From Octopus sinensis (lineage: Eukaryota), in the NCBI RefSeq assembly GCF_006345805.1, contig NW_021835970.1, positions 1 to 64,000 on the forward strand: a stretch of 64,000 bases of DNA, written 5' to 3'. Both the position numbers and the translations under genes were made by a program. The notes below the pieces were generated by a model, which saw only the letters and a list, made by a program, of their open reading frames with translations, did not search any database and was not told where the DNA came from. Position 1 is the stretch's first letter, and every line of letters begins with the position of its first letter. Shown here piece by piece: positions 13,310-54,245 of the stretch.

Positions 13310-16300
13310 ATTTTTTTATTTCAGACAGAACCGATTCAGACGAGTTATTTTTGTTTTATATTATTCCGAATTTTTAAACAACCTTATTCCGAATTTTTTC
13401 GAGTAATGCAAAAAAGTATCATTCCGAAAATTTTTTATTTAATTCACTCATCATTTTTAAAAATAAGTAATTAAATATTTTTAAAATAATATTTTATTAG
13501 CACCATCAAATAATTGTAACTATTTCTTAAATTGATGAATTTTACGAGATTACAGATTAAATTACTAGTGTACTAATTAAAGAACAGAGTAATGGATAAA
13601 ATTGATTGAGGAGAGCGTTACTGCCATCAACAGTTATTTCCAATTTTGTTTGACTAGAGGAATGCCTGACATGAATTGCAAGACATTATTGTGGTAATTT
13701 ATTGTTACAGTCTAACTTCGTTTGGAACATTAATTGTTCCAAAACACAGGTTGTTCCAAAAATCGTATAAAATTTACCGGTCTGCTTACCTTCTGTGTTT
13801 GTTTGGTTATTTTTACTCATATTACAATAAACTTAATTGATTGATTGAACTTGCAAAAGCTTTATCCAGTTTTCAATTTCATCAAAGATGATGTTTTTTA
13901 TCATCTTCATTGTCGATTTTTCTTCTCTCACTTCTTATGAACCCTTAAATAACTGCATTATATTTCATCTTTAGCAAACATTTATCTTCTGTTTCTAAGT
14001 ATCTTCTTTTGGTTGATTGTGATAGAGAGCGGGTGGATATGATAGTTGTTTCTTCATCCACGTTTATTCCATTCAATTGCTTGGTAATAAAACTGGTTTC
14101 TTGCTCACATTTGCTCATCATTTCTTCATCTATTAATATATCTGGTAGAAATTTGGGCTCTTTTCCTTCCTCTTTAGATAACTCATATGTATCTTTCTTT
14201 CCCTTGACCACATCTGCAGGTGTGGTTCTAGTATGGTGGTTTGTGAATGAAGTCTTGAGGGGCTTGTAAAGCTTTGCACTTTTTGAAAAGCTATGTATCC
14301 TTACTATTTCCTTTAACGTAAGTTGGCTTTTCTCACTCTCATTTCTAGTATGGTCGAAAGGCATCAAAAAGTAATCACTTTTACTGTTGTTTCGCTCAAG
14401 AGATATTTCAAGAGAGATATTCTGGTTTCCGCTCATGAGGTATTTTACTTCAAAGAGAGGTTCCGCAGAGATCCGCCTCAGTCCACGTCTGTTCTGTTAA
14501 TAATAATTTGACCGCAAATTTGAAATCATCTCTTTTGGAACGCGAAACATTTATAAATTTGCTGAAAACACTAAAATGGAGTACATTGGTCGCAATAGAA
14601 AAACTTGTGCCAAGGAAATTTTGCACAAAATCTAAATAAAAAGACTGGAGGCTGCATGCAGAATATTATTGAAGACCAGTGGGAATATTTGTATTTTATT
14701 GAGAAACTCTCTATTGTCATGGTTCGCGATAATGCCCTGGTTTTATATTTATTAAAATTATGGCTCAAAAAGTTGTTGATATTATCTATGTTTATCAAAT
14801 AAAATGAAAATCAAGAAGAAAAATTTCAAGTACTTTAAAACTTAAACATTGATCGGCGATGATTATCAGAACGATTTCTCCGATTGGTTTAAAGACTCCA
14901 ATAAAAAACTATGCGGATATCAATGAACTAATAGATATCAATATTTTTTGATTTTAGAAAACAGAGAGTTATATAATTTAACAAAATTTTATACTATATT
15001 TAATTAGTTAATATTGAACAAAATGAGTTTGAAAAAATTTATTTAGAAATTCGACATGAATTGTCTGAGTATGAAATTCATCTGAAATTGGCTAACGAGC
15101 AGAGACTATATTATTCTAATAAAGCTGGAAAGGAGTTTTAATCACCATGAACATTCTGTTTCAATTTATCAATAATTTGGAAAAAGAATCTGACATTTCT
15201 ATCGGGAAAATGGAACCTTGCGGGTCTTTAAAAAGAAAAGAGAACATATAGGATACGATCACTAGATTTCTATTTTTGAAGTATAAATTGAATCCAACTT
15301 AAGTTAATATCAAAGCTATAAAAAAAAGTGTCTTTTTAAATCAATCACAAGAAAACCGCTCCATTCTATTCTCTCTAACAGTTATGAGAATATTGATATT
15401 CCTGAATTTTCTCAATGACTTGCTAAAGGTAAAGAAAATAACAGTTTTCTGCAGAAGGGAATTTATTTTCAAATGAAAAAAATTCAACATGCAATCAATG
15501 TAACAAGGCCAAAAATGTTGTTGATCAGCCGTTTTAAAATGGTTGATCATATGTATTTTGCTTCAAGCGATTCTGACGATTGTTCATTAATTGTATATTT
15601 ACATAATAAAAACTTACTAGCTACCTGATGTGGCTTTTAGTTCTGCATACATGCCAGATATAGAAAAGAGAAAATGTCTTTCTTTATTCTTCGATTTTGA
15701 AGAAGGAGATTTCTGGAAAGTAAATCCCGAAGATCCTAAATTTCGTCGATTCATCAATTATACAGAATTCAACAATTTTTAATGTAATTTCACTGTAATG
15801 TAGATATTCATTAGACTGTGTCGGTATCAATGAATTCTATGGTCGCTTCGAATTCTATTTAAGCGATGAAACTTTTGTCACAAATTTCGTGTTTGAACTT
15901 GAAAAACCGTCCAAAGAATTAACCAAAAACGAACGAGCCAAATACAAAATTGTTAATCGATGCGAATAATGTTTTCGTTGTTTAAAAAATTCTTTATTTG
16001 GTTATTTTAGAATAATTTTTGTAGTTAGTTCTTTAAAAATATTTTTGGGAAATTTCAAAAAAATATTGGATAGGATCTTACAGTTTTGTTGACTGCAAGG
16101 GAGAATAGAAATGGCCTTAGGGCGTCGCCTTGTTGTAGACTCAATTATTTTATGTTACGAATCTAAGTGAAGAATGCTTAGAGTATGCTAGGCAACCTCG
16201 TGGGATACATTCTCTGCTTCACATCTAACCTCGTGTGCTCTGCTGGCTAAAACAGTTCGACTCCCTCGAGCAACCATCTTGTTGTATAGGCGTCAAAAAT

Positions 16301-16806
16301 ATTTCTGTACCAGTCTGTTGTTCTTTACAATAAAAAATTCTGTTCTGTTAATTGTCATTTTATAATATTTATCTTGACCAAAATAGATTTTGAAATAGAG
16401 TTCAAATATTTTTTAAATTTTTTTTCCAAGTCCGAATGTAGAAGCACCTAGGCTCGGTACACCCAAGGCCTGTGACATAATAATTTATAGAAATAATATA
16501 GAATAATAAAATTCGTGTTCAGTTTAAAAACAGTCTAGATAAAAAATATAACAATAATGATTAAAATTAAAAGAAATTGATCATTTTAGATTTTAGGGCG
16601 CTAAAATACAAGATCGCCAAATCCGGGAACAAATAATAAATAAAATTTTGCCATAAGAATATAAAGAATAGAACTTTCTATCAAAAAATAAAGTAAAATT
16701 CAATTAATAAAGATAAATGAGAAGATTTGAAATAAGCGAAATAAACAAATTGAAAGAATAAACTCGCAAATATAACAAAATGATGAAATTTCAGATAATT
16801 TATTAA

Positions 16807-16968
16807 TTAAAAGAAACTACATCGCAAAATATTCCTTCTAATCCAAATAAATAAAAAAATAAAGATTGACCAAATAATGGCAAATTGTGAAACAGAATTG
16901 CGAGCAGATTGTTTCCTTGGAAATTTTGCTCCAGTAGATTTTCGAGCAGGTTGTTGTGTTCTAGCCAT
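16807..16968 (-). CDS. 53-aa H3-tail mini-ORF (unit 4; [16 protein letters not shown]...)
   Basis: Open from ATG to TAA, 162 nt. Confidence 0.55.
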   Translation of the reverse strand: MARTQQPARKSTGAKFPRKQSARNSVSQFAIIWSIFIFLFIWIRRNILRCSFF

Positions 16969-18456
16969 ATTTTTTTATTTCAGACAGAACCGATTCAGAC
17001 GAGTTATTTTGTTTATATTATTCCGAATTTTTAAACAACCTTATTCCGAATTTTTTCGAGTAATGCAAAAAAGTATCATTCCGAAAATTTTTTATTTAAT
17101 TCACTCATCATTTTTAAAAATAAGTAATTAAATATTTTTAAAATAATATTTTATTAGCACCATCAAATAATTGTAACTATTTCTTAAATTGATGAATTTT
17201 ACGAGATTACAGATTAAATTACTAGTGTACTAATTAAAGAACAGAGTAATGGATAAAATTGATTGAGGAGAGCGTTACTGCCATCAACAGTTATTTCCAA
17301 TTTTGTTTGACTAGAGGGAATGCCTGACATGAATTGCAAGACATTATTGTGGTAATTTATTGTTACAGTCTAACCTTCGTTTGGAACATTAATTGTTCCA
17401 AAACACAGGTTGTTCCAAAAATCGTATAAAAATTTACCGGCCTGCTTACCTTCTGTTTGTTTGGTTATTTTTACTCATTATTACATAAAACTTAATTGAT
17501 TGATTGAACTTGCAAAAGCTTTATCCAGTTTTCAATTTCATCAAAGATGATGTTTTTATCATCTTCATTGTCGATTTTTCTTCTCTCACTTCTTATGAAC
17601 CCTTAAATAACTGCATTATATTTCATCTTTAGCAAACATTTATCTTCTGTTTCTAAGTATCTTCTTTTGGTGATTGTGATAGAGAGCGGGTGGATATGAT
17701 AGTTGTTTCTTCATCCACGTTTATTCCATTCAATTGCTTGGTAATAAAACTGGTTTCTTGCTCACATTTGCTCATCATTTCTTCATCTATTAATATATCT
17801 GGTAGAATTTGGGCTCTTTTCCTTCCTCTTTAGATAACTCATATGTATCTTTCTTTCCCTTGACCACATCTGCAGGTGTGGTTCTAGTATGGTGGTTTGT
17901 GAATGAAGTCTTGAGGGGCTTGTAAAGCTTTGCACTTTTTGAAAAGCTATGTATCCTTACTATTTCCTTTAACGTAAGTTGGCTTTTCTCACTCTCATTT
18001 CTAGTATGGTCGAAAGGCATCAAAGTAATCACTTTTACTGTTGTTTCGCTCAAGAGATATTTCAAGAGAGATATTCTGGTTTCCGCTCATGAGGTATTTT
18101 ACTTCAAAGAGAGGTTCCGCAGAGATCCTGCCTCAGTCCACGTCTGTTCTGTTAATATAATTTGACCGCAAATTTGAAATCATCTCTTTTGGAACGCGAA
18201 ACATTTATAAATTTGCTGAAAACACTAAAATGGAGTACATTGGTCGCAATAGAAAAACTTGTGCCAAGGAAATTTTGCACAAAATCTAAATAAAAAGACT
18301 GGAGGCTGCATGCAGAAGATTATTGAAGACCAGTGGGAATATTTGTATTTTATTGAGAGACTCTCTATTATCATGGTCCGCGATAATGCCCTGGTTTTAT
18401 ATTTATTAAAATTATGGCTCAAAAGGTTGATAATTATCTAAGTTTATCAAATCAAA

Positions 18457-18756
18457 ATGAAAATGAAAATCAAGAAGAAAAATTTCAAGTACTTTAAAAC
18501 TTTATTAAACTCTCAAATATCAAAAGTTGAGGATCTGAAGGATAATGCACAGATGTACGCGTCGTCGACAGCAAAAAACAAAACTGGTTTTACACGACGA
18601 ACATGTAAAAAAATTGAAAATTTAGTTGAAATGGTCAATGAAATTGCCAGCCACTTTGAAATAAAATTTAATGGCAAGACCGATTCTCTCAATGAGATTG
18701 GAGAACGTTTTCTAAGCAACAAAATAACACATCTTGAAGTTTTAAAAGAATTATAA
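18457..18756 (+). CDS. Hypothetical 99-aa ORF in the native continuation of segment A
   Basis: ORF only. The sequence recurs inverted at about 46260-46470. No family recognised. Confidence 0.2.
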   Translation: MKMKIKKKNFKYFKTLLNSQISKVEDLKDNAQMYASSTAKNKTGFTRRTCKKIENLVEMVNEIASHFEIKFNGKTDSLNEIGERFLSNKITHLEVLKEL

Positions 18757-30540: not shown

Positions 30541-30612
30541 AATTACTAGTTAGATTTCGATTGTTGCAATAGTTATTTAGAGAACAAATGAATAAAAATT
30601 ATTTTTAAAGTG

Positions 30613-30973
30613 TTATTTTGTATTGTGTACTTAGTAACTGCCTTTGCACCTTCTGTAATAGCATGTTTTGCCAATTCACCCGGAAGAATCAGACGAACTG
30701 CAGTCTGTATTTCACGTGAGGTTGGTAGCTTCGAATTCTGATAGACTAAATTTGAAGCCTCGGTTTTTATTTTGTCAAACATCGAATGATGTAAAACTGT
30801 CCATAGCCATCATAGCCTTCTTGACATCCCAAGTTTGATATGTACTGTCTTTAAAATTTTCATAAGATATATCGAAAAAGTTTTCCTTTTCTTTTTTTCT
30901 TTGTACGACCGGAAAAATTTTTTGTTTTAATGGGAGCTCTTTTTTGTCCTTTTGTGCTAACTTTAGGTGCCAT
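30613..30973 (-). pseudogene. H2B: Histone H2B second copy, frameshifted by small indels (possibly sequencing error)
   Basis: Reverse complement of 459-824; [32 protein letters not shown]. Confidence 0.9.
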
Positions 30974-30999
30974 TATTAACAAAATTTGTATGTTCCGAA

Positions 31000-32101
31000 C
31001 GAACGAAGAATTTTATTGTAAGAAAGAAGAGCGAGACAGAAACTTAGTGCGGAAAGTAATTTTGACGAGACGATTGCTTTGGGCATTCGAGCTCTTCCAT
31101 GGTTCGTCCGCTTTGTCTGTCTATGAGCAGGGACACCTGCTATTCTCCACGATCGATGAATAGGTCAGTTACTTTAGAGCGTTTCCGAAAAGTTCGGATA
31201 GAAGCCTCGATGGCCTGCCGTAGCTCTGGAGACTTGCTCTCCGCCCAGCTTGGACAGGCTCCCATGGATTTAGCATATAGGCTAGTTTTAGAGCGTATCT
31301 CCGTATTTTTTCGCATTTTCGCAGAATTTTCTCATATTGTTTCGAGTAGAACCAAGCTTCCATACCATACAGTAGGTGGGCAAGATTGTTGCATGGTATA
31401 CAAATTGGAAGGTATTTGGATTCAAGTGCATGCTTCTTAGGAGTCGGAGAGCGGCGATGGCTTTCCCTTTTCTCCGTTTGAAATGCAAATGGTATCCCGA
31501 GTTTGCGTCGATTGTGAGCCCCAGGTAACGTATGCTCTCAGCGAGCAATTTCCACCAAAGAGCCGGGTTTGCGATCTTGCGACTTTCTTGGGTTAATTTG
31601 GAGATATGCAGATTTGTCCATGGCCAGCGAGAGTCGCTTACCAATGCACCAATTCTTTATCTCCTCAATGTAGCCGGCAAGTCGTTTCTCCGAGGCATTG
31701 GTGTCCATCGAGGTGTCCAGAACGAGAACATCGTCCGCGTAGAGGAGTAGGGATGTCCTGGGATCGGAGGGTGTGGGGAAACTGCTCATTACCAAATTGA
31801 AAAAGATTGGGCTGAGACAGGACCCCTGCGGAACCCCCCTTCGGAGCAAAATATATCTTGAGAAGAAGCCCGACTCAGAGATAAAAGAGTAGCGATTTGA
31901 GAGGAAGCAGCGCATCCAGAGGAAGACTTCCGCTGTTGGCTCACAGAGTTCGATCCTTTCCAGTAGGTCTCTGTGCCAGACGCTGTCAAAAGCCTTTGAG
32001 ATGTCCAGACATACAAGAGATAAAGTTTCTTTAAACTCCGTTGCTCTCGAGATGGTGGACTGTACCGTAATGAAACAGTCACCGCAGCTACGTCCAGAGC
32101 G
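31000..32101 (-). mobile_element. 5'-truncated LINE-B (Jockey/I-like RT to 3' tail) in the H2B 5' region with a 19-bp TSD
   Basis: FRSGRSCGD, LDISKAFD, GVPQGSCLSP and LYADD motifs. aaaatttgtatgttccgaa at 30981-30999 and 32102-32120. Confidence 0.92.
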
Positions 32102-32120
32102 AAAATTTGTATGTTCCGAA

Positions 32121-32200
32121 GGGAAAAAACATTATATAATAAAAAAGTATTATTCCAAAATTTTTTTAAAAAGTATCATTCCGAATTTTTTGAGAGGAAT
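32121..32200 (-). promoter_or_regulatory. Displaced H2B upstream region with two histone motifs (aaaattcggaatgatactttt; ttttggaataatactttt)
   Basis: Lies beyond the distal TSD and shares the motif found upstream of H3. Confidence 0.5.
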
Positions 32201-32344
32201 AATTTGTAATAGTAGATAATTAAAATATTTCTAATAAAATAAAACAATAAAGTAAAAACGAGAAAGTTATAAATTAGTAATGTCATGAGGAAATTATTAT
32301 TATAAAATTCCGTAGGAACATTAACAAAGTTATAATCCGACACG

Positions 32345-32700
32345 TGTCACAAGCAAAACAATCTTCTGTTCCTTGCTCGTCCATGCCCCTCTGTTGCGGG
32401 CGAAATCCGTAAAGATTTTAGGTCGTCCCAGTTTTTGAAACTTTTGCCACGAAGTTTGAGATCCCTTTCAAGAACTGCCGGAAGAGTGGATCTAGATCTT
32501 CCACGATATTTGTCTCCATGTTCGGAAAAATAATCATCCATTGCCGGAGCTCTGGGGTCCATTCGCAAAATATTAATAAATAATTTCCACCGGCCTCTAA
32601 CGATTTCACCGACCTTCCGCGAGCTTGGTTCGAAATGCCCACATTGAAAATCTTATCATAAGACAGTCACCCATTTGGCAACTCGATGCAATAGAATGCT
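32345..32700 (-). pseudogene. RTE-like LINE C-terminal fragment
   Basis: WKLFINILRMDPRAPAM...YRGRSRSTLPAVLERDL...RNRGAW resembles RTE C-termini. Confidence 0.55.
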
Positions 32701-32829
32701 TAATTCCGAGTAAACAAGGCGACATAACGAAATTGTTAAATGCATACACATGCACCTATGCAGAAAATTTATATTCAAAAAATCAAAAAGGTTAAAGACT
32801 CACTCTATCCAAAGAGTTGACACTACTAT

Positions 32830-33315
32830 CCTTAGTTAATTTACTAAATAATTAAGATTAATTTATTCAAGTTTAATGCAACTTGGGTCACTCGTCTTCT
32901 GAAAAAGTTAAATTTGTTGACTTAAATAGCAATATCAAAAAAATGACAATTTGGGAAATTAATTATTTTAAAAATAAAATGAATAACAACGTCATTAAGA
33001 AATGCCAAATCGCGAATAAAAAAGCTCATTCGAAACGTAAAGAAAAAAGTAAATTTACAAAAAATAACACTTATAGATGAATTAAAAACAACACTGATCA
33101 CCAACCCGTAATAGCGACCACTCCAATGCAGTTAAGCATTATTGAACTCCAAAAACAAGCCGTAAACAGATGACCGTACAGGAGAAATTCTGGAAGTAGT
33201 GGACAGTTTTGACGTTCTGTCCCAATCAGAGGCCAACTACTTAGTCCTAGACCAGAATTACTTGACAGAGCTAAAATAATCGAAAATCCACCAACATATG
33301 CCCCTTCAGAACACA
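32830..33315 (+). repeat. Partial duplicate of the gene C region (about 50070-50560)
   Basis: Close match by eye, including the 29-nt intron position. Confidence 0.8.
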
Positions 33316-33317
33316 GC

Positions 33318-35353
33318 CAATCGCTGCATTGCACGAAAGCACGCAACGCACCTAATCGCTGCATTGCACGCATTTTCGTACGTGCAATGTGATCATCAAA
33401 CTTACCGGACGGCTTAAAGAGCACGCCCAAATAAGTCATCCGATCAACTGCAGCGATTGCTGACCCGCTCAGCAATAACCTAGGAACAAAAATAGTGTAA
33501 CCCCTCGTCCTTTTACAGACTTTAAGGACACTGCACTTGTCCGCGCACATTCTCAGACCCCTACTCCCACACCAGTTTGCAAGTCCATCCACAGCAACTG
33601 AAGCCTACGACACGCACACTCCGGTTTCATTGAGTGATCCCAGAGGATAATGTCGTATGCATAGATTACCATTTCAGTACGAGCATTGACTGGCATAGGC
33701 GCAGTGGCATAAACACATTGAATAGTGTCGGACTGAGCACAGAGCCCTGAGGGACCCCGCGAAGGACTGTTGCGACTTTAGAAAAGACCCCCTGATGCCG
33801 CACGACCTGTCTGCGAGATTCAAGAAACCCCGACAGCCAGCGCCTTAGACACGGAGAAACCCCACACGTGGCAAGGGAACTCCGGAGGCCGTCGTGCCAC
33901 ACCGAGTCGAAGGCCTTTTCAATGTCGAGACTAACTAAAATACCGCATTCCCTTTTCTGGAGGGCGCTCTTCATACTAGACGACACCTTGTGAAGGCAGT
34001 CCCCGCATGAGCGGCCCTCCTGAAGCCCCATTGGAACTCAGGGAGGGCGTCTGCCACCATCAGCTCTCCAGGAGCCTTTGGTGCATAATTCTTTCTAGGA
34101 TTTTAGATATCGCGGGGAGCAAGGAAATGGGCCTATATCCCCGGGGACATCATGTGGCTTCCCGGGTTTTCCGATAAGGATCACCTCAGCTACTTTCCAC
34201 CTGGAAGGAATCATCCCAAGTCGCAAGCTCCCGTTAAATAAACCTTTAGCGCAGTGATTAACCGTGGCAGGGCCTTCTTAAAGATGGCCATCGGGATCCG
34301 ATCCAAGCCCGCCGCGGTGTTCTTACTTCGGGAGATTGCTGCCAGAATCTCCGCTTCAGTAATTTCGCCTGCATCGTCATTGATAATCCAGCTGGCAGCG
34401 CTTGTCCCACGACAATATCTGCTGGACAGTATCAAAGGACGATGTCTCTACGAACTGACTTCCGTCAGTTCCCGAGAGATGTCATTGAGATGGGCTGAAA
34501 GTATTTCAACCACCTCAACCGGGTCCGAAGCGAGGGTTCCATCAGAGCGTTTAAGGCGCACTGACTTAGCCCCCCTTCTCCCCGACAGGCTCTTCAACTG
34601 CTTCCAGAAGTCCGGAAAGCGAGGGTCCACGCTTCGGCAGGCCCTCTCCCACCGCGAACTTTCGGCCTTCTTAAAGATGGCCATCGGGATCCGATCCAAG
34701 AAGTACCAGGCGCTCGGCTTCTGCAGGAGATCCCAGTGTTAGCTCCGCCACTTCAAGAGGGCGATTACCCTGCTTGAAGCGTGCAATGGCAGAGGCACTG
34801 GGGTACTCCTGCTGCAGGTGATCTAGGAGGTCATTATCCTCGAAGTCCCGAGGAACCCCGAGGAGGAGGACACTTACCTTTCTTACCTTACGTTCGATCC
34901 TGACTAGGCGATTGCATGCCAGGACCGAACGGATTTGACTTCTCCAACTCCCCTTTGAAGTTGGAGAAGTCATCCTCCTTCTCCCACCCAAGCAGGAATT
35001 GGTGGGGCTCCCTCTTCAGGACTCTATACAGCTTGAGGGCTGGATAGAGTCCAAGACACCTAAAATTTTTATGACCGAGGCCTTCCCACTAATAGGGAGG
35101 ACCTCAAGTCGTGCCACAGCACCAAAGGTAATTCTACCCCCGGCGCCAGTGGTCTTCTTGGGTGTGCATCCACCTGAGCGGACACACACCCAGTACCTAA
35201 AACATTAGGGGGGGTTGGACGGCCGGCAACACGTTTGGGTTTCCCCACCGTGTGCCAACCGTCCTCGGGTGAAACCTTATTTCCTGCCGAGGAAGAAGAG
35301 TCTCCAGTGAGTGCTGAACCCACGTGGGAGGGTCCAGGCTTCTTCTTCCTATC
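33318..35353 (-). mobile_element. LINE-A 5'/central part: ORF1-like region, endonuclease deleted, RT; 3' end missing
   Basis: [10 protein letters not shown] and VLLLGVPRDF (ORF1-like); KNTAAGLDRIP; LDIEKAFDSVWH; GVPQGSVLSP. Confidence 0.85.
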
Positions 35354-35509
35354 CTCGTAAATTTTTCCAGAAATTCTTCGAACACCCCCTCTTCGACATA
35401 GTCTTCTTATTGCTGGCTTAGTAATTCCTTGTATATTGTCAATTAATATCTTTCGAAATCGTTTTGCACCACTTTTTCCTCCTTTGCCACCTTTACCACG
35501 TCCAGACAT
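35354..35509 (-). pseudogene. H4: Histone H4 5' half (52 codons) fused in frame to LINE-A ORF1 (fusion ORF 35069-35509)
   Basis: [52 protein letters not shown], followed by non-histone GC-rich sequence. Confidence 0.92.
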
Positions 35510-35528
35510 TAGGAAAAATTCTCTAAAT

Positions 35529-36640
35529 TCCTGGAGGAAAAATTTATTAGTTAAGGGAGGCAGTTAAAAACTAACTAAGTAGACCTTCGGCATCGCTGCC
35601 TTTTCAGTCTCCATCACACACACGCCTCCCTACACACAACCACAAGTTAACTTACTTACCTGCCTTCCTGCCATCCAGAATATCTTCTCTAGGACCTCAG
35701 AGAGGCCTTGAGGGATGATTCCTGGCGTCGGAGAGCTCAGTCCGGAATCCTAAGCCATAGGCTAGCCTTATGGCTCGTCTTCTTACTTTTTTAAGCACGT
35801 CAACATGCTTATCCCTGTCCTCATAGAGGTACCAAGCGTGGACGCCATAGGTCAAGACGGGTAACACCATGGCGTTAAACACGCGGAACCAGGCACCTCT
35901 GCTCAAGCGGAAAGCACGCAACGCACCTAATCGCTGCATTGCACGCATTTTCGTACGTGCAATGTGATCATCAAACTTACCGGACGGCTTAAAGAGCACG
36001 CCCAAATAAGTCATCCGATCAACTGCAGCGATTGCTGACCCGCTCAGCAATAACCTAGGAACAAAATTAGTGTAACCCCTCGTCCTTTTACAGACTTTAA
36101 GGACACTGCACTTGTCCGCGCACATTCTCAGACCCCTACTCCCACACCAGTTTGCAAGTCCATCCACAGCAACCTGAAGCCTACGACACGCACACTCCGG
36201 TTTCATTGAGTGATCCCAGAGGATAATGTCGTATGCATAGATTACCATTTCAGTACGAGCATTGACTGGCATAGGCGCAGTGGCCATAAACACTTGAATA
36301 GTGTCGGACTGAGCACAGAGCCCTGAGGGACCCCGCGAAGGACTGTTGCGACTTTAGAAAAGACCCCCTGATGCCGCACGACCTGTCTGCGAGATTCAAG
36401 AAACCCGACAGCCAGCGCCTTAGACACGGAGAAAACCCCACACGTGGCAAGGGAACTCCGGAGGCCGTCGTGCCACAACCGAGTCGAAGGCCTTTTCAAT
36501 GTCGAGACTAACTAAATATACCGCATTCCCTTTTTCTGGAGGGCGCTCTTCATACTAGACGACACCTTGTGAAGGCAGTCCCCGCATGAGCGGCCCTCCC
36601 TGAAGCCCCATTGGAACTCAGGGAGGGGAACTCAGGGAGG
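35529..36640 (-). mobile_element. 5'-truncated LINE-A (RT to 3' end), tail 19 nt upstream of the H4 ATG
   Basis: RT motifs, MTYLGV and PVLTYG. The 3' terminus ...tgcctcccttaactaataaatttttcctccagga is on the minus strand. Confidence 0.88.
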
Positions 36641-36674
36641 TGCCTCCCTTAACTAATAAATTTTTCCTCCAGGA
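36641..36674 (+). mobile_element. 34-bp LINE-A 3' terminus in the opposite orientation, 9 nt upstream of the H2A ATG
   Basis: Perfect inverted repeat of 35529-35562. Confidence 0.85.
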
Positions 36675-36683
36675 CAGAGTATA

Positions 36684-37043
36684 ATGTCTTCAAGAGGAAA
36701 AGGAGGAAAAGTACGGTCAAAGGCTAAAAGCAAATCCGTTCGGGCCGGGTTACAGTTTCCAGTTGGACGCATTCACCGGTGTCTCCGTCATGAAACCCGA
36801 ATGCGAGTAGGAATTCCTGCCGCAGTATATATGTGCGCAGTATTGGAATATGCTGTGGCTGAAATGCTTGAACTTGCTGGAAATACAGCAGTAAAATGTG
36901 GAAAAAGAAGAATTAAACCACGTCACATTGTCGTTGCAATTGGAAATGACGACGAATTAAAAGAATTAACTCAGAAAGCTATTATTTCATCTGGTGGATT
37001 TATGATTCGCAAAACTGCAGAAACTCCTAAACCAACTTCTTAA
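36684..37043 (+). CDS. H2A: Histone H2A (divergent, 119 aa, short C-tail)
   Basis: [13 protein letters not shown]...[16 protein letters not shown]...KRRIKPRHI...NDDEL. Confidence 0.95.
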
Positions 37044-37293
37044 CTTTAAATTAATTATTTGAATAATGCGCTGTTATTTTGTAATATTGTTTTCGAAATA
37101 CAATAGATCAACCAGTTAAGTTTTTTTAACGAATTTCAAAATAATTTCAAACACAATTAACGAATAAACGTTTAGAAGTAATTATAAATAAAATATCGCA
37201 ATACTGTGTTATTCTATCATTGGCAAAATATTTTTTAGTCCAATATAATTTATTTACTTAAGCTAAATTATCCCAAAAAATAGTAAATATATA

Positions 37294-38498
37294 CAGTGAA
37301 CAAAAATAAAAATTGAAAAGGCATTTTCTCATGAATTTACTATGAAACAATATTTAAAAAATAACTTCTATCGATTTAAAACATTAAATAAAGTTTTGCT
37401 TTATTTTTTAGTTTGTCTAAAAAATATTATATTTATACGTTTTTCCATTCATTGATAATTCAGAACCCAAAAAAATGAACAAATTTATTTAATATCCATT
37501 ATATCCTCCATTAGCTCTAATTACATCTAGTGTTCGGCCTGGCATGCTATTAATAAGACTTTTTGCGTATTTCATTTTGAGTTAATTCCAAATGGATGAT
37601 ATTTTTGCAAATAAATGTTCTTTTTTTCAAAAATTCTCTTCTTTTGATTTTTTCTTTAATAAAGGCCCAAACATTATCTATAGGGTTTAAATCTGGGCTT
37701 TGTGTTGGCCATAGTAGTAATTTGATATTATTTACTTGAAAAAAAGCTCTTTGCTATTGCCGAAGTATGTTTCAGATCATTGTCTTGTTGGAAACTAGGA
37801 TCTTTATGTTTGATTTTGTTCAGAAATGAGATCATATTATTCGTTAATATGTTAACATGCAAAGCTCCACCAATCTTCTCTTTTATCAAAACCAAATTAA
37901 TAAATCCAATATTGATTATGGCATGATAGTTCATGATAGTTCCTTTACCGAATTTTACTGTTTTTGTAAGATTGTTTGTTAAATATTTTTCCTTGCGATT
38001 TCTCGATACTAAAGTTCTTACATCACTATTTTACATATTAAATTTACTTTTATCACTTAAAATAACTCGCTCCCAAAATATTTCGAGAGCATATTGCATG
38101 TTTGGCATAGCTTTAATCATTGAAGTTTAGGGTTTTTAGTAAAAAGTGGTCTTTTCGTGGGTGGATATGCATTCAGACCAATTTTTTCGTGGTATTTCTT
38201 ATTGTTTGAGCTGTTACTGATTTCCCTTTTTTTGTAAATGTTTTGGTAAATTTAAAACAGTTGAAATTGGCATCCACTTTTCAAGCTTCTTTAATTTAAA
38301 ATATTTTTTGCAGAGAAGTTACAATTTTAAATTTGTTCAGTAATTTAAATTTGTTCAGTTTTTTTTTGGTTTTAAATTTTCGATATCATAAAAAAATACT
38401 TTAATCTATGTTAAAAATAAATTTGAAACATATTTGCAATATTGTCCATTTGTAAATTTATAAGAAAAAGCATGTCCAGTTTTTATTTTTGTTCACTG
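37294..38498 (-). mobile_element. Tc1/mariner element with both TIRs, TA TSD and a degenerate transposase
   Basis: TA|cagtgaacaaaaataaaaa ... tttttatttttgttcactg|TA. WERVILSDKSKFN, FQQDND and WPTQSPDLNPI motifs on the minus strand. Confidence 0.92.
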
Positions 38499-38729
38499 TA
38501 GCTTGTTCATGGTTATAGGTTTTTGTTTGTTTTCCTACTATTTATTAATTATCCAACAAATCCGAATTGAACAATTTTTAATTATATTTTTTCTAAAATA
38601 CACAACTAGTATCTTCTTTTTATCTAAACGAGGTGCAACATTACATTTTCTACAAACTTCAACAAAAAATTTAAAAATTGTCTCAGAGTTATACAAACAA
38701 TAAATCATTTTTTTATTTAAAAAAACAAG

Positions 38730-39140
38730 TTATGTTTTTTCACCTCGAATTCTTCTCGATAAATGCATATCGTTTGGCATTATAGTTACTCTTTTTCCGT
38801 GAATTGCGCACAAATTACTGTCTTCAAAAATTCCAACTAGGTAACTCTCTGCCGCTTCTTGGAGAGCGACAATCGCTGACGATTGAAAACGCAAATCAGT
38901 TTTGATAAACTGAGCGGTTTCTCTCACGAGTCTCTGGAATGGAAGTTTTCGTAGTAACAAATCAGTGCTCTTTTGATATCGTCTAATTTCTCGCATTGCA
39001 ACAACTCCAGGTCGAAATCGATGAGGTTTCTTTACTCCTCCAAATTGTGAAACAGACTTGCGAGCAGATTTTGCAGACAACTGTTTCCTTGGTACTTTTG
39101 CACCAGTAGATTTTCGAGCCGTTTGTTTTGTTCTAGCCAT
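38730..39140 (-). CDS. H3: Histone H3 (intact, 136 aa, divergent)
   Basis: [13 protein letters not shown]...KKPHRFRPG...EIRRYQKST...RIRGE. Confidence 0.97.
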
Positions 39141-39196
39141 ATTTTATTATTTCAGAAAACAATGACAATGCCAGTATAGTAAAAAAAGACATCATT

Positions 39197-40120
39197 TGGG
39201 GGGGAAAAATTTATTAGTTAAGGGAGGCAGTTAAAAACTAACTAAGTAGACCTTCGGCATCGCTGCCTTTTCAGTCTCCATCACACACACGCCTCCCTAC
39301 ACACAACCACAAGTTAAGACTTACCGCCTTACTGCCATCCAGAAATAATCTTCTCTAGGACCTCAGAGAGGCCTTTGAGGGATGATTCTGGGCGTCGGAG
39401 AGCTCAGTCCGGAATCCTAAGCCATAGGCTAGCCTTATGGCTCGTCTTCTTACTTTTAAGCACGTCAACATGCTTATCCCTGTCCTCATAGAGGTACCAA
39501 GCGTGGACGCCATAGGTCAAGACGGGTAACACCATGGCGTTAAACACGCGGAACCAGGCACCTCTGCTCAAGCGGAAAGCACGCAACGCACCTAATCGCT
39601 GCATTGCACGCATTTTCGTACGTGCAATGTGATCATCAAACTTACCGGACGGCTAAAGAGCACGCCCAAATAAGTCATCCGATCAACTGCAGCGATTGCT
39701 GACCCGCTCAGCAATAACCTAGGAACAAAATTAGTGTAACCCCTCGTCCTTTTACAGACTTTAAGGACACTGCACTTGTCCGCGCACATTCTCAGACCCC
39801 TACTCCCACACCAGTTTGCAAGTCCATCCACAGCAACCTGAAGCCTACGACACGCACACTCCGGTTTCATTGAGTGATCCCAGAGGATAATGTCGTCTGC
39901 ATAGATTACCATTTCAGTACGAGCATTGACTGGCATAGGCGCAGTGGCCATAAACACATTGAATAGTGTCGGACTGAGCACAGAGCCCTGAGGGACCCCG
40001 CGAAGGACTGTTGCGACTTTAGAAAAGACCCCCTGATGCCGCACGACCTGTCTGCGAGATTCAAGAAACCCCGACAGCCAGCGCCTTAGACACGGAGAAA
40101 CCCCACACGTGGCAAGGGAA
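39197..40120 (-). mobile_element. 5'-truncated LINE-A, tail about 56 nt upstream of the H3 ATG
   Basis: IYADD motif intact. Same 3' UTR as 35529-35700. It replaces the promoter that is continuous in the H3 copy at 1712. Confidence 0.88.
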
Positions 40121-40484
40121 CATCACAAATAACCAAGTGAATGTCACATATATGAAGGCTCTGAATGCTGGATAATTGGAATATGAGACTTCAGATGTCA
40201 ACGAACTTGGTTATTTTATTAAATATAAAAAATGTCGGAATATTTGGACATGGATATTTTCTTGTTAATAGAAATGATAAAGAGGGAACAAACTACATAA
40301 TGCATAGATTTATTGGAAAATATGAATATCCGATGGAATTTGTGGAAATAGTTTGCAACAAATATTTGTTGCCTTTTAAGTAAATTACTTTTTGATGTAA
40401 AAATAAATTTATCTGAAAAATTATCTTTTATAAATACAGATAAGCTGTTTTTAATCCAAATATTTTTTTTGACTTTAAATCAGT

Positions 40485-40712: not shown

Positions 40713-41655
40713 CTTATTAAACAACCTTATTCCGAATTTTTTTGAGTAATGCAAAAAGTATCATTCCGAAATTTTTTGGTTAATTCACTCATCATTTTTA
40801 AAATAAGTAATTAAATATTTAAAAAAAAATATTTTATTAGCACCATCAAATAATTGTAACTATTTCTTAAATTGATGAATTTTACGAGATTACAGATTAA
40901 ATTACTAGTGTACTAATTAAAGAACTTTTGTTTATAAATCCCATTCCGTGGAGCGAGAGGAATTATATGCGATATATTGAAAGTAATAATATGTTTGGTC
41001 TATAGTTATAGGACACACTCATAATTGGCGACGACCTTTGCCAGTTTTTCGCTTGCTTAGAATTTAACATTAATTATTTTGACTGTTTCGACACATATTT
41101 GTGTCCAGAACTTGTTGAAATGATGCAAAAATCTGGCAGCGAAAAGAAGTCATTGAAAGAAACGCCCAGAATCATTTGGACTTCGAAAATTATGACTCGT
41201 GGTCAGGAATAAGAGCTGCGCGTGATCTTTACTAATTAGTCGATTCTATAAAAAACAATAGCTTAGATTGGTAAATTTTTAAATTTGTCCGAATTTTATT
41301 TTTTTAACCTCGTGTGCTCTGCAGGTAAATCGTTCGATACACCCAAGGCCTGTGACATTATAATTTATAAAAATAAAATAATTAAATTCGTGTTCAGTTT
41401 AAAAAAATCTAGAAAAAATTATAAACATAATGATTAAAATTTGGTAGAAATTGATCATTTAGATTTTAGGGCGCTAAAATACAAGATCGCCAATCCGGGA
41501 ACAAATAAATAAAAGTTAGCCATAAGAATATAAAGAATAGAACTTTCTAAAAATTCAAGTAATAAAGATAAATGAGAAGATGAAATAAGCGAAATAAACA
41601 AATTGAAAGAATAAACTCGCAAATATAACAAAATGATGAAATTCAGATAATTTTT

Positions 41656-44600
41656 TTTCACGTGCGCGTGTTGTTGTTGTGGGTACTTTCTGTATTCATT
41701 TGTTCATTCGTTATTTGCTATTCAATTATACTATTAATTATTAATTCATTGTGTTAATCATTGTTTCATTCTACTTTCTATTGTTCCATTCTATTGTCCT
41801 AATCCTTTGTCATTGTTTCAATCTACTTTTTTTTCCTCATGCCTCTCTGTTTCTCTAAAAAGTCGCTTTGTTGCACTTCGTGCATGCTTAACAACCCCAG
41901 GAAGAACGGCTGTCATTGCTCCTCCTGTGACCGTTTTTTCCATCTATCCTGTGCCGGAATACCTAAATCGGCCGCCGCTTCTCTGTCGAAGTGGAGTTGC
42001 CACCCTTGTCTTACCCAATTAAACTTGAGCCCGCAGCCGGTATTCTCATCCAAAGATTCACACTCTCAGCCCATCATTTCTTCCCCCTCGGTAAAAGACT
42101 TCCTCTTGGCGGTCGCAAAAGCCAAGAGAAGCCGCTCGATCCCTATCAAAATCCCGAAGGCCGCACGTATCCTTGCCGCAGACTCTTTATCAATAGTCAT
42201 CGACAAAGCCATTACTTCCAATGACCCAGCCTCCTGGAATCATCTTTTCTGCTTTGGCGTCATGGCTCTCGGCCTCCGCAGAGAGGATTCCCCACCAAAA
42301 TCGATTTCCAACCGTTCTAAGCATAACATCTCAGCCTACCTGAATCGCCCTGATGATGACTTTTCTGCCTGGCTGGGCGAAACAAAGCCCCAGCCAACGC
42401 ATAAAGTCAAAAAATCCGGTCAAAGTAGCAACGCAGACTCAGAATCCCAAGACATTTTGCGCCTGCGGAACAGGATCAACACTAAACTGATGGAGGGAAA
42501 TGTTGCCAGCGCTGTCCGTGTTTTATCATCTGATGACAGAGTTCTTTCCATTACACCAAGTGTCCTCGCTGAGCTTAATGCAAAACATCCGAGTCCCCCC
42601 GCGGACCTTCGCTCTACTACTCTAAACTCCGATTACCCCGCAACCTATGCCCCCAAAGAAGATGTTCTAGATGCTATTAATTCCCTCGCAACCGGCAGCT
42701 GCGGGGGCATCGACGGACTACGCCCAGGGCATGTGAAAGATCTACTCTCAAGCCACACCTGCGAGGCCGGCGCTCGCCTCCTCGTCTCCATAACTGCTCT
42801 GACAAACATGATCATCCAGGCACAAATCCCCGAGTACGCTCGGGACCTCCTATTTTCTGCAAACATCACCGCATTGAGGAAGAAGGAAGGCGGGATCCGC
42901 CCTATTGCTGTTGGTACATTTTTTCGCCGTCTAGCTTCCAAAGTAGCCTGTAGACAAGTTACCAAGTTTTTGGGCCAGGAACTACGCCCGTTTCAGTTGG
43001 GCGTCGGTGTCCGCGGCGGCTGTGAAGCTGCTGTCCATGCCGCAAGAAAGTTTATTTCCGCCTCGTCCGAAAGGCCGGATAACGCCTCTGTACTCGTGAA
43101 GCTAGACTTGACAAATGCCTTCAACAGTCTTCGTCGGGACTGTATTCTCGAAACTTGCTACCGCCGTGCTCCCTCAATTGCCCGCTTGGTATCTATGGCT
43201 TACTCCAAGCCAAGCCTTCTTATTGCCGATGACCAAATCCTACATTCCAGCAACGGTGTTCAACAGGGCGACCCACTTGGCCCGTTGCTTTTTGCCCTGA
43301 CGATCGATCCTGTTGTTCGGAACATCTCATCTCGTTTCAATGTATGGTACCTGGACGACGCTACTATCGGAGGTCCGGTAGCTTCTGTCCTTAAAGATTT
43401 GGAAAATCTGATCCCCTCCCTTAATTCTCTTGGCCTATCCATCAATCCGCTCAAATCCGAAATTGCCAATATTGGCTTTACCCCAGAAGATTTTACCTCT
43501 GTATTTAATACGTTCTCGAATGTCCTTCCAAATATCCGCAGGACCTTGATTGAAAATTTGAAAATCTTAGGGTCCCCTATATCTAATCTGGGTGTTGAAT
43601 CATCCCTATATGCTAAAACATCCTCGCTGTTGGCAATTTCTAACAAACTAGCAAAAATCGATTCCATTCCGGCCTGTTTTTCCTACGCAATTGTTTTGCA
43701 ATTCCAAAGCTTCTATTATCCTCAGAAGTGCCCCATGTTTCTTTAACCTGAGGGCTCTCGAATCATTGATTTTTCGCTTAAATCCAGCTTGGAGTCCATT
43801 TGCAATATTACCCTCGATGAGATCGGTTGGCAACAGGCCATCCTTCCTATAAGCCATGGCGGTATTGGTATCCGATCATCTGTCGACCTTTCTATCCCGG
43901 CGTACTTATCTTCAGTTAATGCGACAAATGATCTGGTCCAGGAGATTCTCCAATCCGTAACCGAATCATCTATGGACACAGAGTCGGTCGCCGCAGAAAG
44001 TTGCTGGAAAGGGATGTCTCTGGAAATCCCGGAGAATACGCACGCCCAAGGCCAATGGGACCGGATCCTTTGCGACCACAAGATAAACAGCCTCAAGCCG
44101 AAACTCAATCAACATCGCTTGGCGTGCTTATTGGCCGCCTCGCAACCATACTCCGGTGCATGGCTTACAGCAATCCCTATGGCGTCAATCGGCACCTTAA
44201 TGGACAACGACTGTGTAAGGATTTCCGTCTCTCTCCGCCTCGGACTTCCCATTTGCAAAACACACCAGTGCCGCTGCGGTTTAAGAGTGGACCCTTATGG
44301 CCATCATCCCCTCTCCTGCTCACGTAGTGCCGGACGTTTCCCACGACACGCCGCCATCAACGACACCGTGAGCCGTGCCCTAACGACGGCGGGGTTTCCT
44401 AATGAGCTCGAACCAGTCGGGCTCGACAGAGGCGACGGTAAGCGCCCGGATGGCATGACAATCTTCCCGTTTGAAAAGGGGAAATGCCTTATCTGGGACG
44501 CCACCTGCTCCGACACTTTCTCCGCCAAGAATCTAATTGCCTCCGCTGCGGAACCGGGCTCAGTTGCAAAGCAGGCGGAACTAACAAAACAGAAGAAGAA

Positions 44601-44841
44601 GTACCGGGTCCTGGCCATGAATCACCTATTCGCTGCAGTCGCGGTGGAAACCTCTGGAGTCATCGGTCCGCAGACGCTATCGTTTCTCCGTCGCCTTGGA
44701 TCTAAGCTCGTGGTTGCCACGAAAGATCCCAACGAGTCGATCAGACTCTTTCAAAGGATCTCATTGGCCATCATGCGCGGGAATTGCCAGTCGATTCGCT
44801 GCGCATTTTACTCTTTCGTTCATTAACAATAAGATTGCACA

Positions 44842-44875
<34 letters not shown>
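41656..44875 (+). mobile_element. Near full-length CRE-like RLE non-LTR retrotransposon with poly(A)33, inserted in the X-Y-Z repeat
   Basis: The flanks rejoin as cagataattt^attaattaaaag of the repeat (TSD at most about 5 bp). Single long ORF and a poly(A) tail at 44843-44875. Confidence 0.95.
41839..44826 (+). CDS. PHD finger - RT - CCHC - restriction-like endonuclease polyprotein (~990 aa; small indels near 43670-43750)
   Basis: C4HC3 pattern in residues 11-57; GIRPIAVG, KLDLTNAFN, GVQQGDPLGP, WYLDD; CRCG...HPLSC...RH; RPDG...WDAT...KKKY...AVETSG. Confidence 0.92.
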
Positions 44876-51949: not shown

Positions 51950-54245
51950 AACTTTTGTTTATAAATCCCATTCCGTGGAGCGAGAGGAATTATATGCGAT
52001 ATATTGAAAGTAATAATATGTTTGGTCTATAGTTATAGGACACACTCATAATTGGCGACGACCTTTGCCAGTTTTTCGCTTGCTTAGAATTTAACATTAA
52101 TTATTTTGACTGTTAAGACACATATTTGTGTCCAGAACTTGTTGAAATGATTCAAAAATCTGGCGGCGAAAAGAAGTCATTGAAAGAAACGCCCAGAATC
52201 ATTTGGACTTCGACTTCGAAAATTATGACTCGTGGTCAGGAATAAGAGCTGCGCGTGATCTTTACTAATTAGTCGATTCTATAAAAAACAATAGATTAGA
52301 TTGGTAAATTTTTAAAATTTGTCCGAATTTTATTTTTTTAACCTTGTGTGCTCTGCAGGCTAAATCAGTTCGATACACCCAAGGCCTGTGACATTATAAT
52401 TTATAAAAATAAAATAATTAAATTCGTGTTCAGTTTAAAAAAAATCTAGAAAAAAATATAACAATAATGATTAAAATTTAAAGAAATTGATCATTTTAGA
52501 TTTTAGGGCGCTAAAATACAAGATCGCCAAATCCGGGAACAAATAAATAAAATTTTGCCATAAGAATATAAAGAATATAACTTTCTATCAAAAACAAGGT
52601 AAAATTCAATGAATAAAGATAAATGAAAAGATTTGAAATAAGCGAAATAAACAAATTGAAAGAATAAACTCGCAAATATTACAAAATGATGAAATTTCAG
52701 ATAATTTATTAATTAAAAGAAACTACATCGCAAAATATTCCTTCTAATTTAATTAAATAAAAAAATAAAGATTGACCAAATAATGGCAAATTGTGAAACA
52801 GACTTAAGAGCAGATTGTTTCCTTGGAAATTTTGCTCCAGTAGATTTTCGAGAAGTTTGTTTAGTTCTAGCCATATTTTTTTATTTCAGACAGAATGAAT
52901 GAAGAATTTTATTGTAAGAAAGAAGAGCGAGACAGAAACTTAGTGCGGAAAGTAATTTTGACGAGACGATTGCTTTGGGCATTTGAGCTCTTCAATGGTT
53001 CGTCCGCTTTGTCTGTCTATGAGCAGGGACACCTGCTATTCTCCACGATCGATGAATAGGTCAGTTACTTTAGAGCGTTTCCGAAAAGTTCGGATAGAAG
53101 CCTCGATGGTCTGCGGTTAAATTTAAGAAATAGTTACAATTATTTGATGTTGCTAATAAAATATTATTTTAAAAATATTTAATTTTTTATTTTTAAAATT
53201 TTCGGAATGATACTTTTTTGCATTACTCGAAAAAATTCGGAATAACGTTGTTTAAAAATTCGGAATAATATAAAACAAAAATAACTCGTCTGAATTGGTT
53301 CTGTCTGAAATAAAAAAATATGGCTAGAACTAAACAAACTGCTCGAAAATCTACTGGAGCAAAATTTCCAAGGAAACAATCTGCTCTTAAGTCTGTTTCA
53401 CAATTTGCCATTATTTAGTCAATCTTTATTTTTTTATTTAATTGGATTAGAAGGAATATTTTGCGATGTAGTTTCTTTTAATTAATAAATTATCTGAAAT
53501 TTCATCATTTTGTAATATTTGCGAGTTTATTCTTTCAATCTGTTCATATCGCTTATTTGAAATTTTTTCATTTATCTTTATTCATCGAATTTTACCTTGT
53601 TTTTGATAGAAAGTTCTATTCTTTATATTCTTATGGCTAACTTTTATTTATTTATTCCCGGATTTGGCGATCTTGTATTTTAGCGCCCTAAAATCTAAAA
53701 TGATCAATTTCTACCAAATTTTAATCATTATTGTTATATTTTTTTCTAGATTTTTTTTAAACTGAACACGAATTTAATTATTTTATTTTTATAAATTATA
53801 ATGTCACAGGCCTTGGGTGTATCGAACTGATTTAGCCTGCAGAGCACACGAGGTTAAAAAAATAAAATTCGGACAAATTTTAAAAATTTACCAATCTAAT
53901 CTATTGTTTTTTATAGAATCGACTAATTAGTAAAGATCACGCGCAGCTCTTATTCCTGACCACGAGTCATAATTTTCGAAGTCGAAGTCCAAATGATTCT
54001 GGGCGTTTCTTTCAATGACTTTTTTTCGCTGCCAGATTTTTGCATCATTTCAACAAGTTCTGGACACAAATATGTGTCGAAACAGTCAAAATAATTAATG
54101 TTAAATTCTAAGCAAGCGAAAAACTGGAAAAGGTTGTCGCCAATTATGAGTGTGTCCTATAACTATAGACCAAACATATTATTACTTTCAATATATCACA
54201 TATAATTCCTCTCGCTCCACGGAATGGGATTTATAAACAAAATAT
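51950..54245. repeat. Large imperfect palindrome: X-Y-H3tail arms (about 51950-52890 and 53300-54245) around a LINE-B tail plus promoter block
   Basis: Arms are reverse complementary by eye. H3-tail ATGs at 52874 (minus) and 53320 (plus) point outward. Confidence 0.85.
52896..53109 (-). mobile_element. LINE-B 3' end with (TTCA)n tail, about 21 nt upstream of an H3-tail ATG
   Basis: Same 3' UTR as 31000-31210. On the minus strand the tail reads aaaattcttcattcattc|tgtctgaaat. Confidence 0.85.

Follow-up and report, generated by a model that had tools for sequence, protein, structure and literature searches.

Long interspersed elements (LINEs) that insert at one place in a multicopy gene are known from several organisms. 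SLACS, CZAR and CRE1/2 of trypanosomatids and NeSL-1 of C. elegans insert a few nucleotides (nt) past the start of the spliced-leader gene, a multicopy gene transcribed by RNA polymerase II (Pol II); these elements have a restriction-like endonuclease and are directed to one exact sequence in a non-coding gene. Dictyostelium TRE5-A/TRE3 and yeast Ty3 and Ty1 integrate beside genes transcribed by RNA polymerase III (Pol III), such as those for transfer RNA (tRNA), through contacts with TFIIIB/TFIIIC. To our knowledge, target-specific LINEs use genes for ribosomal RNA (rRNA), small nuclear RNA (snRNA), tRNA or the spliced leader, or telomeres or microsatellites, and we know of none that targets histone genes; in full-text literature searches, no LINE directed to histone genes or to a protein-coding gene family was found. 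Here we describe a stretch of 64,000 nt (the window; positions 1-64000 of contig VCDQ01011424.1, assembly GCA_006345805.1, whose proteins NCBI labels Octopus sinensis) and 19 further loci, in which the 3' ends of two groups of LINEs, LINE-A and LINE-B, stand directly in front of histone genes. It seems likely that both groups integrate by target-primed reverse transcription at the starts of the H2A, H2B, H3 and H4 genes, at a site defined by the promoter.

LINE 3' ends in front of histone genes

The first sample consisted of histone-bearing loci of the same assembly, collected by exact protein look-ups, and of one locus, L015, reached through the LINE-A reverse transcriptase (RT) protein, a search with which returned a single close protein (P0001); together they comprised 276 kb of non-redundant sequence on 11 contigs. 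Four hold-out loci were fetched afterwards, which brought the total to the window and 19 loci, about 339 kb non-redundant, with junctions on 12 contigs. A LINE 3' terminus was scored as on target when a histone ATG lay at most 60 nt downstream on the same strand, and for counts of distinct events the duplicates were collapsed by hand. In the first sample, 24 of 30 termini were on target, the chance value being 0.75% (P = 6e-46). With the hold-out loci included, the count was 26 of 35 at a chance value of 0.7% (P about 4e-49), and after duplicates had been collapsed about 20 of about 28 distinct events were still on target (P = 2e-37). All 26 on-target termini were in sense orientation. The hold-out loci also supplied a new on-target event, a LINE-B at -9 of H2A that is present twice (L023).

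The original prediction had been made from the window. The LINE-B 3'-end motif occurs there exactly three times, at 406-423(+), 31005-31022(-) and 52901-52918(-), as does that of LINE-A, at 35536-35559(-), 36644-36667(+) and 39203-39226(-); the shuffled-sequence control gave 0-0.04 matches for both. These positions confirm the six predicted 3' ends at 432, 31000, 35529, 36674, 39197 and 52896. Each of the six lies 7-57 nt before a histone ATG on the same strand, namely those of H2B (459 and 30973), H4 (35509), H2A (36684), H3 (39140) and a truncated H3 (52874), and the distances first reported are correct: 7 nt from the target-site duplication (TSD) for H2B, 19 nt for H4, 9 nt for H2A, 56-57 nt for H3 and 21 nt for the H3 tail. 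The ends at 432 and 31000 are indeed duplicates of one event, since positions 1-1204 are an inverted duplicate of 31424-30234 at 96.7% identity. Those at 35529 and 36674, by contrast, had been taken for separate elements and turned out to be the two ends of one LINE-A composite; with the duplicate and the composite each counted once, the window holds four or five independent events, not six. Adjacency to H4 and to an H3 tail also stood up, although the 'H4' is not a whole gene and comprises only the leader and codons 1-53, fused to ORF1. Because LINE-A carries such histone-derived 5' heads, some of the adjacencies between a LINE 3' end and a histone ATG are LINE-to-LINE junctions.

The LINE-B copy at 31000-32101 (-), a 5'-truncated RT fragment with a YADD motif, is situated between the TATA box and the leader of an H2B gene. 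It is enclosed by a perfect 19-bp TSD, AAAATTTGTATGTTCCGAA, at 30981-30999 and 32102-32120. The leader, with the downstream copy of the duplication, and the H2B gene itself (ATG 30973, frame broken in the assembly) occupy 30572-30999 (-), and on the other side the upstream copy is followed by the native H2B type-1 promoter (tattatataatg...; 32102-32200, -). With its 19-bp TSD, the native TATA region upstream and the H2B leader downstream, this is a textbook target-primed insertion. Its inverted duplicate begins the window: the 3' part of a LINE-B (1-432, +; the counterpart of 31000-31424), which starts beyond the edge of the window and ends in a (GTTC)n tail, is followed at 433-863 (+) by the H2B leader, formed by the downstream TSD copy at 433-451, and by the H2B gene with its ATG at 459.

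An empty site was found for the LINE-A insertion at 39198. An H3 paralogue with an intact native promoter (1590-2119, +) is 99% identical over 860 bp to the H3 gene preceded by this LINE, up to the junction; the paralogue of the H3 at 39140 is placed at 1712, and its empty site at 1590-1714.

Position of the junctions relative to the promoter

At least five lineages (A1/A2, A3/E, B, B' and B'') use the same nucleotide positions. There is one main position per histone type, and it is reused within 2 nt by two to four lineages. At H2A -9/-10 we found A1 (in the window), A2 (L005), B' (L006) and B (L023); at H2B -26, B and A2, in two promoter types; at H3 -20/-21, A and B; at H3 -36, B' and B''; and at H4 -19, A, A3 and E. 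Most of the copies at shared positions are 5'-truncated to 0.2-1.1 kb and were thus dead on arrival, which rules out later selection for transcription as the cause of the shared positions.

Measured downstream from the start of the motif TT(C/G)G(G/C)AAT (TTCGGAATG), the junction came at 39-43 nt in all six native promoter types, and in the five types that have a TATA-like box it lies about 17-20 nt past that box. Over the same six types the ATG follows the junction at anything from 9 to 36 nt, and the sequences at the junctions (GGAAC, AAAAC, CTGAA, TGTCT, CAGAG, ATTTA) have no motif in common. Since the distance to motif and TATA-like box is constant whereas the target sequence is not shared, the coordinate is set by promoter architecture. 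Three insertions have a native promoter on one side and a native leader on the other, namely a LINE-A in the native H3-a promoter (NR c13488:11443-10431), an H2B-2-headed LINE-A2 between the H2B-1 promoter and the H2B-1 leader (c6206), and the LINE-B at 31000-32101 described above.

In the light of these results, the insertion bias of LINEs towards histone starts that had been predicted is supported by the enrichment, by the participation of at least five lineages and by the reuse of positions. The alternative that high histone density or a few duplicated events were its sole cause was tested on the larger sample and fails (26/35 termini, about 20 distinct junctions). The proposal that insertion is directed to the region of the transcription start by sequence or by chromatin holds in part: the presumed start region is probably targeted, but there is no common target sequence, and the site is fixed to the promoter motif and not to the ATG. 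That the targets differ in their 5' sequences was correctly seen.

A motif, TTCGGAATGATAC (variant TTGGCAATGATAC), was also noticed about 20 nt upstream of the TATA-like box in H2A, H2B and H3 genes (L004 9847-10000; window 1590-1711), often in several copies and in both orientations. The H4 promoter contains the variant TTGGCAATGATAC, and no TATA-like box was found in it. This motif is a candidate for a histone-specific promoter element.

Histone-derived heads of LINE-A

Every full-length LINE-A starts with a histone leader and N-terminal histone codons in frame with ORF1. The A1 head consists of H4 codons 1-53 (window 35509-35351, L001 and L006), the A3 head extends to about codon 51 of H4 (L005), and A2 has either H3 codons 1-28 or H2B codons 1-27, both joined to the identical LINE nucleotide (TGTCTGCAC...). 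All four fusions are in frame (4/4), and the 5' junctions inside histone coding sequence are all in sense (6/6). Past the head, ORF1 of LINE-A has no methionine for about 150 codons, which means that the histone ATG must be where translation begins.

The heads are a heritable component of LINE-A and move together with it. The same junction of H3 with TGTCTGCAC recurs with at least five different, unrelated sequences upstream of it (a LINE-A 3' end, a mariner fragment, another transposable element, the unrelated DNA of L015, and native H3 promoters); an H2B type-2 head occurs in an H2B type-1 locus, and the A1 heads have common variants that are missing from the H4 gene downstream of the same element. 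Behind its H3 or H2B head, A2 keeps a remnant, LSALRRLCRSGGV, that is like H4 residues 33-45 (about 25/30 nt, read by eye), which suggests an older H4-like head and a stacking of heads.

A head being captured can be seen at L023, where an H3-headed LINE-A2 follows directly on a native H2B promoter with codons 1-91 of the gene; this shows capture in progress. The sense 5' junctions fit either a second-strand joining past the first nick, with a long duplication as in R9, or a switch of the RT to histone transcripts as template. A simple long-TSD model was rejected as the general origin of the heads, as head and downstream gene differ in type and the A1 variants are absent from the downstream H4; such an origin may apply to first-generation events, for example L001 and L023. 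Insertion inside coding sequence was likewise rejected as a source, since no LINE-A or LINE-B 3' end adjoined an internal histone codon in the sampled loci.

At the 5' boundary of LINE-A heads, fragments of a mariner element were seen to adjoin the H4 leader at -12 and the H3 leader at about -25. GC-rich elements of other kinds end at internal histone codons: H3 codon 84 (L006 6247), H2B codon 90 (L001 16364) and H2A codon 91 (L011 15492).

Domains and classification of the elements

The LINE-A group comprises the subfamilies A1, A2 and A3/E, and the LINE-B group B, B' and B''. In the best LINE-A copy (L001 1672-5935), ORF2 (L001 3210-5258) matched the Pfam families Exo_endo_phos (1.3e-07), Exo_endo_phos_2 (8e-10) and RVT_1 (5e-32), giving a layout of an N-terminal apurinic-type endonuclease (APE) followed by the RT, with no C-terminal endonuclease. 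The translated ORF1 of L001 contains three CX2CX4HX4C knuckles, for which the Pfam score of zf-CCHC was 20.3 bits against a cut-off of 20.8 bits. The 5' truncation points range from 0.2 to 4.1 kb across copies; LINE-A has (TCC)n or C-rich tails, the LINE-B group (GTTC)n, (ATTC)n or (ATTCC)n. By its domains, truncations and tails, LINE-A fits the class of APE-type LINE retrotransposons, that is, those that lack long terminal repeats. Its nearest named relatives in the databases are RTs annotated by hit name as 'mobile element jockey', at 30-39% identity, and a PDB sequence search for the placement of the LINE endonuclease gave matches only to the RTs of L1 and R2. RT identity is 55-64% within B, B' and B'' and about 26-43% between the LINE-B group and LINE-A.

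The window also holds a full-length element of another kind, LINE-C (41654-44873, +), with a PHD-like finger, an RT and a C-terminus resembling a CCHC finger and a restriction-like endonuclease. It ends in a poly(A) tail of about 30 nt, is bounded by a 5-7 bp TSD and lies at an ordinary AT-rich site away from histone starts, with an empty site at 52700-52707; accumulation at gene starts is thus not a property of every element in these arrays. When the LINE-C protein was looked up by exact match, the window itself was the only hit. Fragments related to LINE-C were noted at window 1220-1420, L014 5120-5278 and 14287-14472, and L012 5615-5773, and at several loci short ORF fragments like its C-terminus are found shortly downstream of the H2B stop codon; the latter may be the remains of an old insertion since incorporated into the H2B unit. 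An ORF of 221 amino acids (aa) with a PHD finger at window 57616-58281 (+) resembles the N-terminus of LINE-C and is probably another copy of this kind.

Proposed mechanism and alternative explanations

In the mechanism that we propose, a nick made by the endonuclease at the histone start site, in the template strand, would prime reverse transcription, so that the 3' end of the LINE would be set against the histone leader. A promoter-bound factor or the structure of the open promoter may guide the nick. Insertion would take place in gene orientation between the TATA-like box and the leader, at the presumed start or a few nt from it, and because the target is defined by promoter architecture a full-length copy would land directly behind a resident histone promoter. 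The RNA of LINE-A would begin with the captured histone leader and N-terminal codons (H4 1-53, H3 1-28 or H2B 1-27), and since the first nucleotides of the element are themselves a histone leader, a native-looking start of transcription and translation may be rebuilt at each insertion. A head would originate from a 5' junction made within a histone gene or on a histone mRNA, and the elements would be transcribed from histone promoters and depend on them. If this is true, the element would acquire a histone-like (S-phase or germline) expression, and the histone tail might lend the ORF1 protein nuclear import or a ride on histone chaperones.

The downstream histone gene, too, could survive the insertion. 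An AATAAA at the LINE 3' end lies 24-31 nt before the H2A ATG and the native TATA-like box at -27 (counted by hand); because the former falls at the native spacing of the latter, the displaced gene may keep a core promoter. The coding sequences behind the LINEs are intact and 100% identical, which is compatible with a retained core promoter and no proof of it. Taken as one joint model, in which a ribonucleoprotein guided by a histone-specific factor or locus restores the promoter unit together with a tail-ORF1 fusion, AATAAA replaces the TATA box and heads are recaptured again and again, these ideas are tentative, and we doubt that all of them apply together.

Several observations weigh against promoter-defined insertion at histone genes. 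Since all loci but one were retrieved by way of histone proteins, histone arrays are over-represented in the sample, and at L015, the sole locus reached through the LINE-A RT, the 3' flank is non-histone. The hold-out loci contain two off-target LINE-A ends (L020 and L022) and an A3/E end 128 nt upstream of H4; with at least four off-target copies (L015, L020, L022 and NR c7429:4530), targeting is not absolute. Two junctions break the 39-43 nt rule: that of H3-b at -20, which is 55 nt from the motif, and that of the window H3 at -58, which is inside it. The equation of the junction with the transcription start, or with a point a few nt from it, leans on the TATA spacing and on where the heads start. 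The type of the head usually differs from that of the downstream gene, and no single simple model, be it long TSDs or template switching, fits all heads. A full-length LINE-B was not seen in the sampled loci, where this group is represented by its RT part, and an APE has been demonstrated for LINE-A only.

The histone-biased sampling makes general promoter targeting the most serious rival: the elements might insert at the Pol II TATA promoter of any gene, and histones would dominate through the choice of loci. The constancy of promoter geometry in place of a common target sequence speaks for this, as do the off-target copies with uncharacterised flanks. However, all captured heads are derived from histones (H4 twice, H3, H2B and the older H4-like remnant), the TTCGGAATG motif appears to be specific to these histone promoters, and no start of a non-histone gene was seen at any junction; we consider general targeting unlikely, if still worth bearing in mind. 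It is less probable that the units of a LINE 3' end and a histone gene are chimeric retrocopies, made when the RT switched template between histone mRNA and LINE RNA, and not resident genes. The coincidence of the junctions with the head starts, at the presumed cap site, would agree with such an origin, and the constant sense orientation of the histone pieces at LINE 5' ends makes it plausible for the heads; but the LINE-B at 31000-32101 stands alone within its 19-bp TSD with a native TATA box upstream, the LINE-A copy in c13488 is flanked on either side by native H3 promoter, and the H2A and H3 genes preceded by LINEs keep the H3 / H2A / H4 order of uninterrupted arrays, as far as gene order goes.

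Insertion could also be random, with copies surviving only in redundant histone arrays. Multicopy arrays do tolerate damage, and many other transposable elements reside in these; such a retention bias nevertheless fails on the reuse of positions at the nucleotide level, on the sense orientation of 26/26 termini and on the avoidance of the abundant AT-rich spacer, and we give it little credence. A small number of events copied by segmental duplication or gene conversion, together with high histone density, is a very improbable source of the pattern. Duplicates certainly exist (432/31000; c13488 twice; c7076 twice; L023 twice; LINE-B before H2B three times), yet about 20 junctions can be told apart by lineage, tail, target gene or truncation point, and the enrichment survived collapsing (P = 2e-37). 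The least probable account of all is mis-joining of long reads in repeats. The assembly was built from error-prone long reads, and differences in homopolymer length between near-identical copies break many reading frames, a typical long-read error not to be mistaken for decay; junctions of the same kinds, however, recurred on 12 contigs, with TSDs and matching empty sites. The promoter-defined insertion of LINE-A and LINE-B at histone starts thus remains the reading that we prefer.

Histone genes and other features of the window

The histones of the window are unusually divergent, with identities to the human proteins of about 59% for H2A, 52% for H2B, 78% for H3 and 83% for the H4 fragment. 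Their surroundings are AT-rich and highly repetitive. An Rfam scan of the window detected no histone 3' stem-loop, and AATAAA was seen after histone stop codons. The nearest relatives of H2A are in Logan contigs of the public runs ERR12370323 and ERR12408770 (76%) and in a 2.2-kb contig of an ant assembly, DF945167.1 (73%); no cephalopod was among the H2A matches listed. Because of this, the histone-bearing contigs may not be octopus DNA and may come from a co-sequenced organism. Literature and accession searches yielded nothing further on the host, and the sequence of a locus listed as carrying an innexin did not reach the innexin part. The protein clusters at 90% contain only O. sinensis entries and one Logan member. 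The longer of the run contigs carries four histone genes in a LINE-free cluster of about 3 kb.

Around the LINE-A composite and the H4 head, the window is arranged as follows. The body of a LINE-A1 with an internal deletion (33335-35350, -; reference 1-666 + 2399-3724) has its ORF1 in frame from the H4 head, whose leader and codons 1-53 (35351-35528, -) form the in-frame fusion. The leader is adjoined by a LINE-A 3' fragment of 1.1 kb (35529-36627, -; reference 3019-4097), and a second LINE-A 3' terminus, at 36641-36674 (+), adjoins the leader of the H2A gene (36684-37043, +; intact, 119 aa). This terminus is an inverted copy of 35529-35562, perfect over 34 nt. When uninterrupted, the divergent H4/H2A promoter is 154 bp long; the composite replaces about 125 bp of it and leaves about 20 and 10 nt. 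The composite at 35529-36674 looks like one twin-priming-like event at both ends of the promoter, or two insertions and a deletion.

Further along, the intact H3 gene of 136 aa, with 57 nt of its own promoter (38730-39197, -), is preceded by a 0.92-kb LINE-A 3' fragment (39198-40121, -), the junction being inside the TTCGGAATG motif of the H3 promoter. A LINE-B 3' fragment of 222 bp with an (ATTC)2 tail (52893-53114, -) adjoins the leader of a truncated H3 (leader and codons 1-33; 52773-52892, -); this H3 tail, with its ATG at 52874, was cut at codon 33 by a separate short element. The break at codon 33 is made by a short AT-rich element (attatttggtcaatc ... ttagaaggaatattttgc; window 52700-52790 and other H3-tail modules). 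The same element cuts H3 at codon 14/15 in L001 12685. The RefSeq model apparently splices around the element.

In addition, window 2737-18502 is made up of 4.3 copies of a unit of about 3.6 kb, about 98% identical to one another, and these units contain a truncated H3 (leader and codons 1-33) behind a native promoter (9662, 13309 and 16968). A Tc1/mariner-like element was noted between H2A and H3 at about 37480-38330, with fragments at L001 1600-1660, in L006 and at NR c7429:14913 (within L005). A tandem repeat at 55901-56909 has a period of about 94 bp and about 10 copies of 87-94% identity.

Comparison with known systems

If confirmed, these elements would be a case of position-specific integration of APE-type LINEs at Pol II promoters, set by geometry and not by target sequence, and of natural, repeated in-frame capture of host coding sequence, the histone tails, as the start of ORF1. 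The mode of targeting may also be of interest for targeted gene delivery.

U6-L1 chimeras and the products of twin priming in mammalian L1 are sporadic dead ends. The LINE-A heads resemble the former in that template switching, a plausible origin for them, puts another RNA in sense at the 5' side of a LINE, and the composite at 35529-36674 resembles the latter in its inverted LINE pieces and loss of target DNA. Unlike L1 chimeras, however, the heads of LINE-A are inherited and define subfamilies.

As with the LINEs of spliced-leader genes, the element would lie behind a host promoter and have a host leader at the 5' end of its RNA. It differs from them in having an APE and no C-terminal restriction-like endonuclease; only LINE-C resembles them in this respect, and it lies away from histone starts. 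The targets here are, moreover, four protein-coding genes of differing sequence, and the captured leader includes codons that would be translated within ORF1. With TRE5-A and Ty3 the elements share a fixed distance from a promoter element across differing sequences (39-43 nt in six promoter types, with two exceptions), and rules of position and orientation that apply throughout one class of genes, although their targets are Pol II histone promoters. Set beside strictly target-specific LINEs (R1, R2, Tx1 and NeSL), independent insertions here likewise use the same position, but there is no single conserved target sequence.

Utopia, Keno and Dada target snRNA genes, and short interspersed elements with snRNA-derived heads have been described (PMC4640811, PMC3706591, PMC4494074). 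These elements, like LINE-A, use multicopy genes as targets and gain host-gene sequence as a 5' 'head'; their targets are small RNA genes with internal or special promoters, and neither histone genes nor in-frame protein fusions are involved.

A TSD of 126 bp has been described for R9 (Gladyshev and Arkhipova 2009, as cited in PMC5035012). R1, R2 and R9 resemble the LINEs of the histone arrays in residing in a tandem multigene family, with several unrelated lineages in each array and long duplications possible; if our reading is confirmed, the histone genes would offer a second 'rDNA-like' arena for the coexistence of a multigene family and its resident retrotransposons. R1, R2 and R9 are co-transcribed with the host gene, as the histone-array LINEs would be under the proposed mechanism. 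They insert at one conserved sequence in genes transcribed by RNA polymerase I, whereas here what the sites share is their distance from a promoter motif, some copies lie off target, and the TSDs seen are 19 bp or small.

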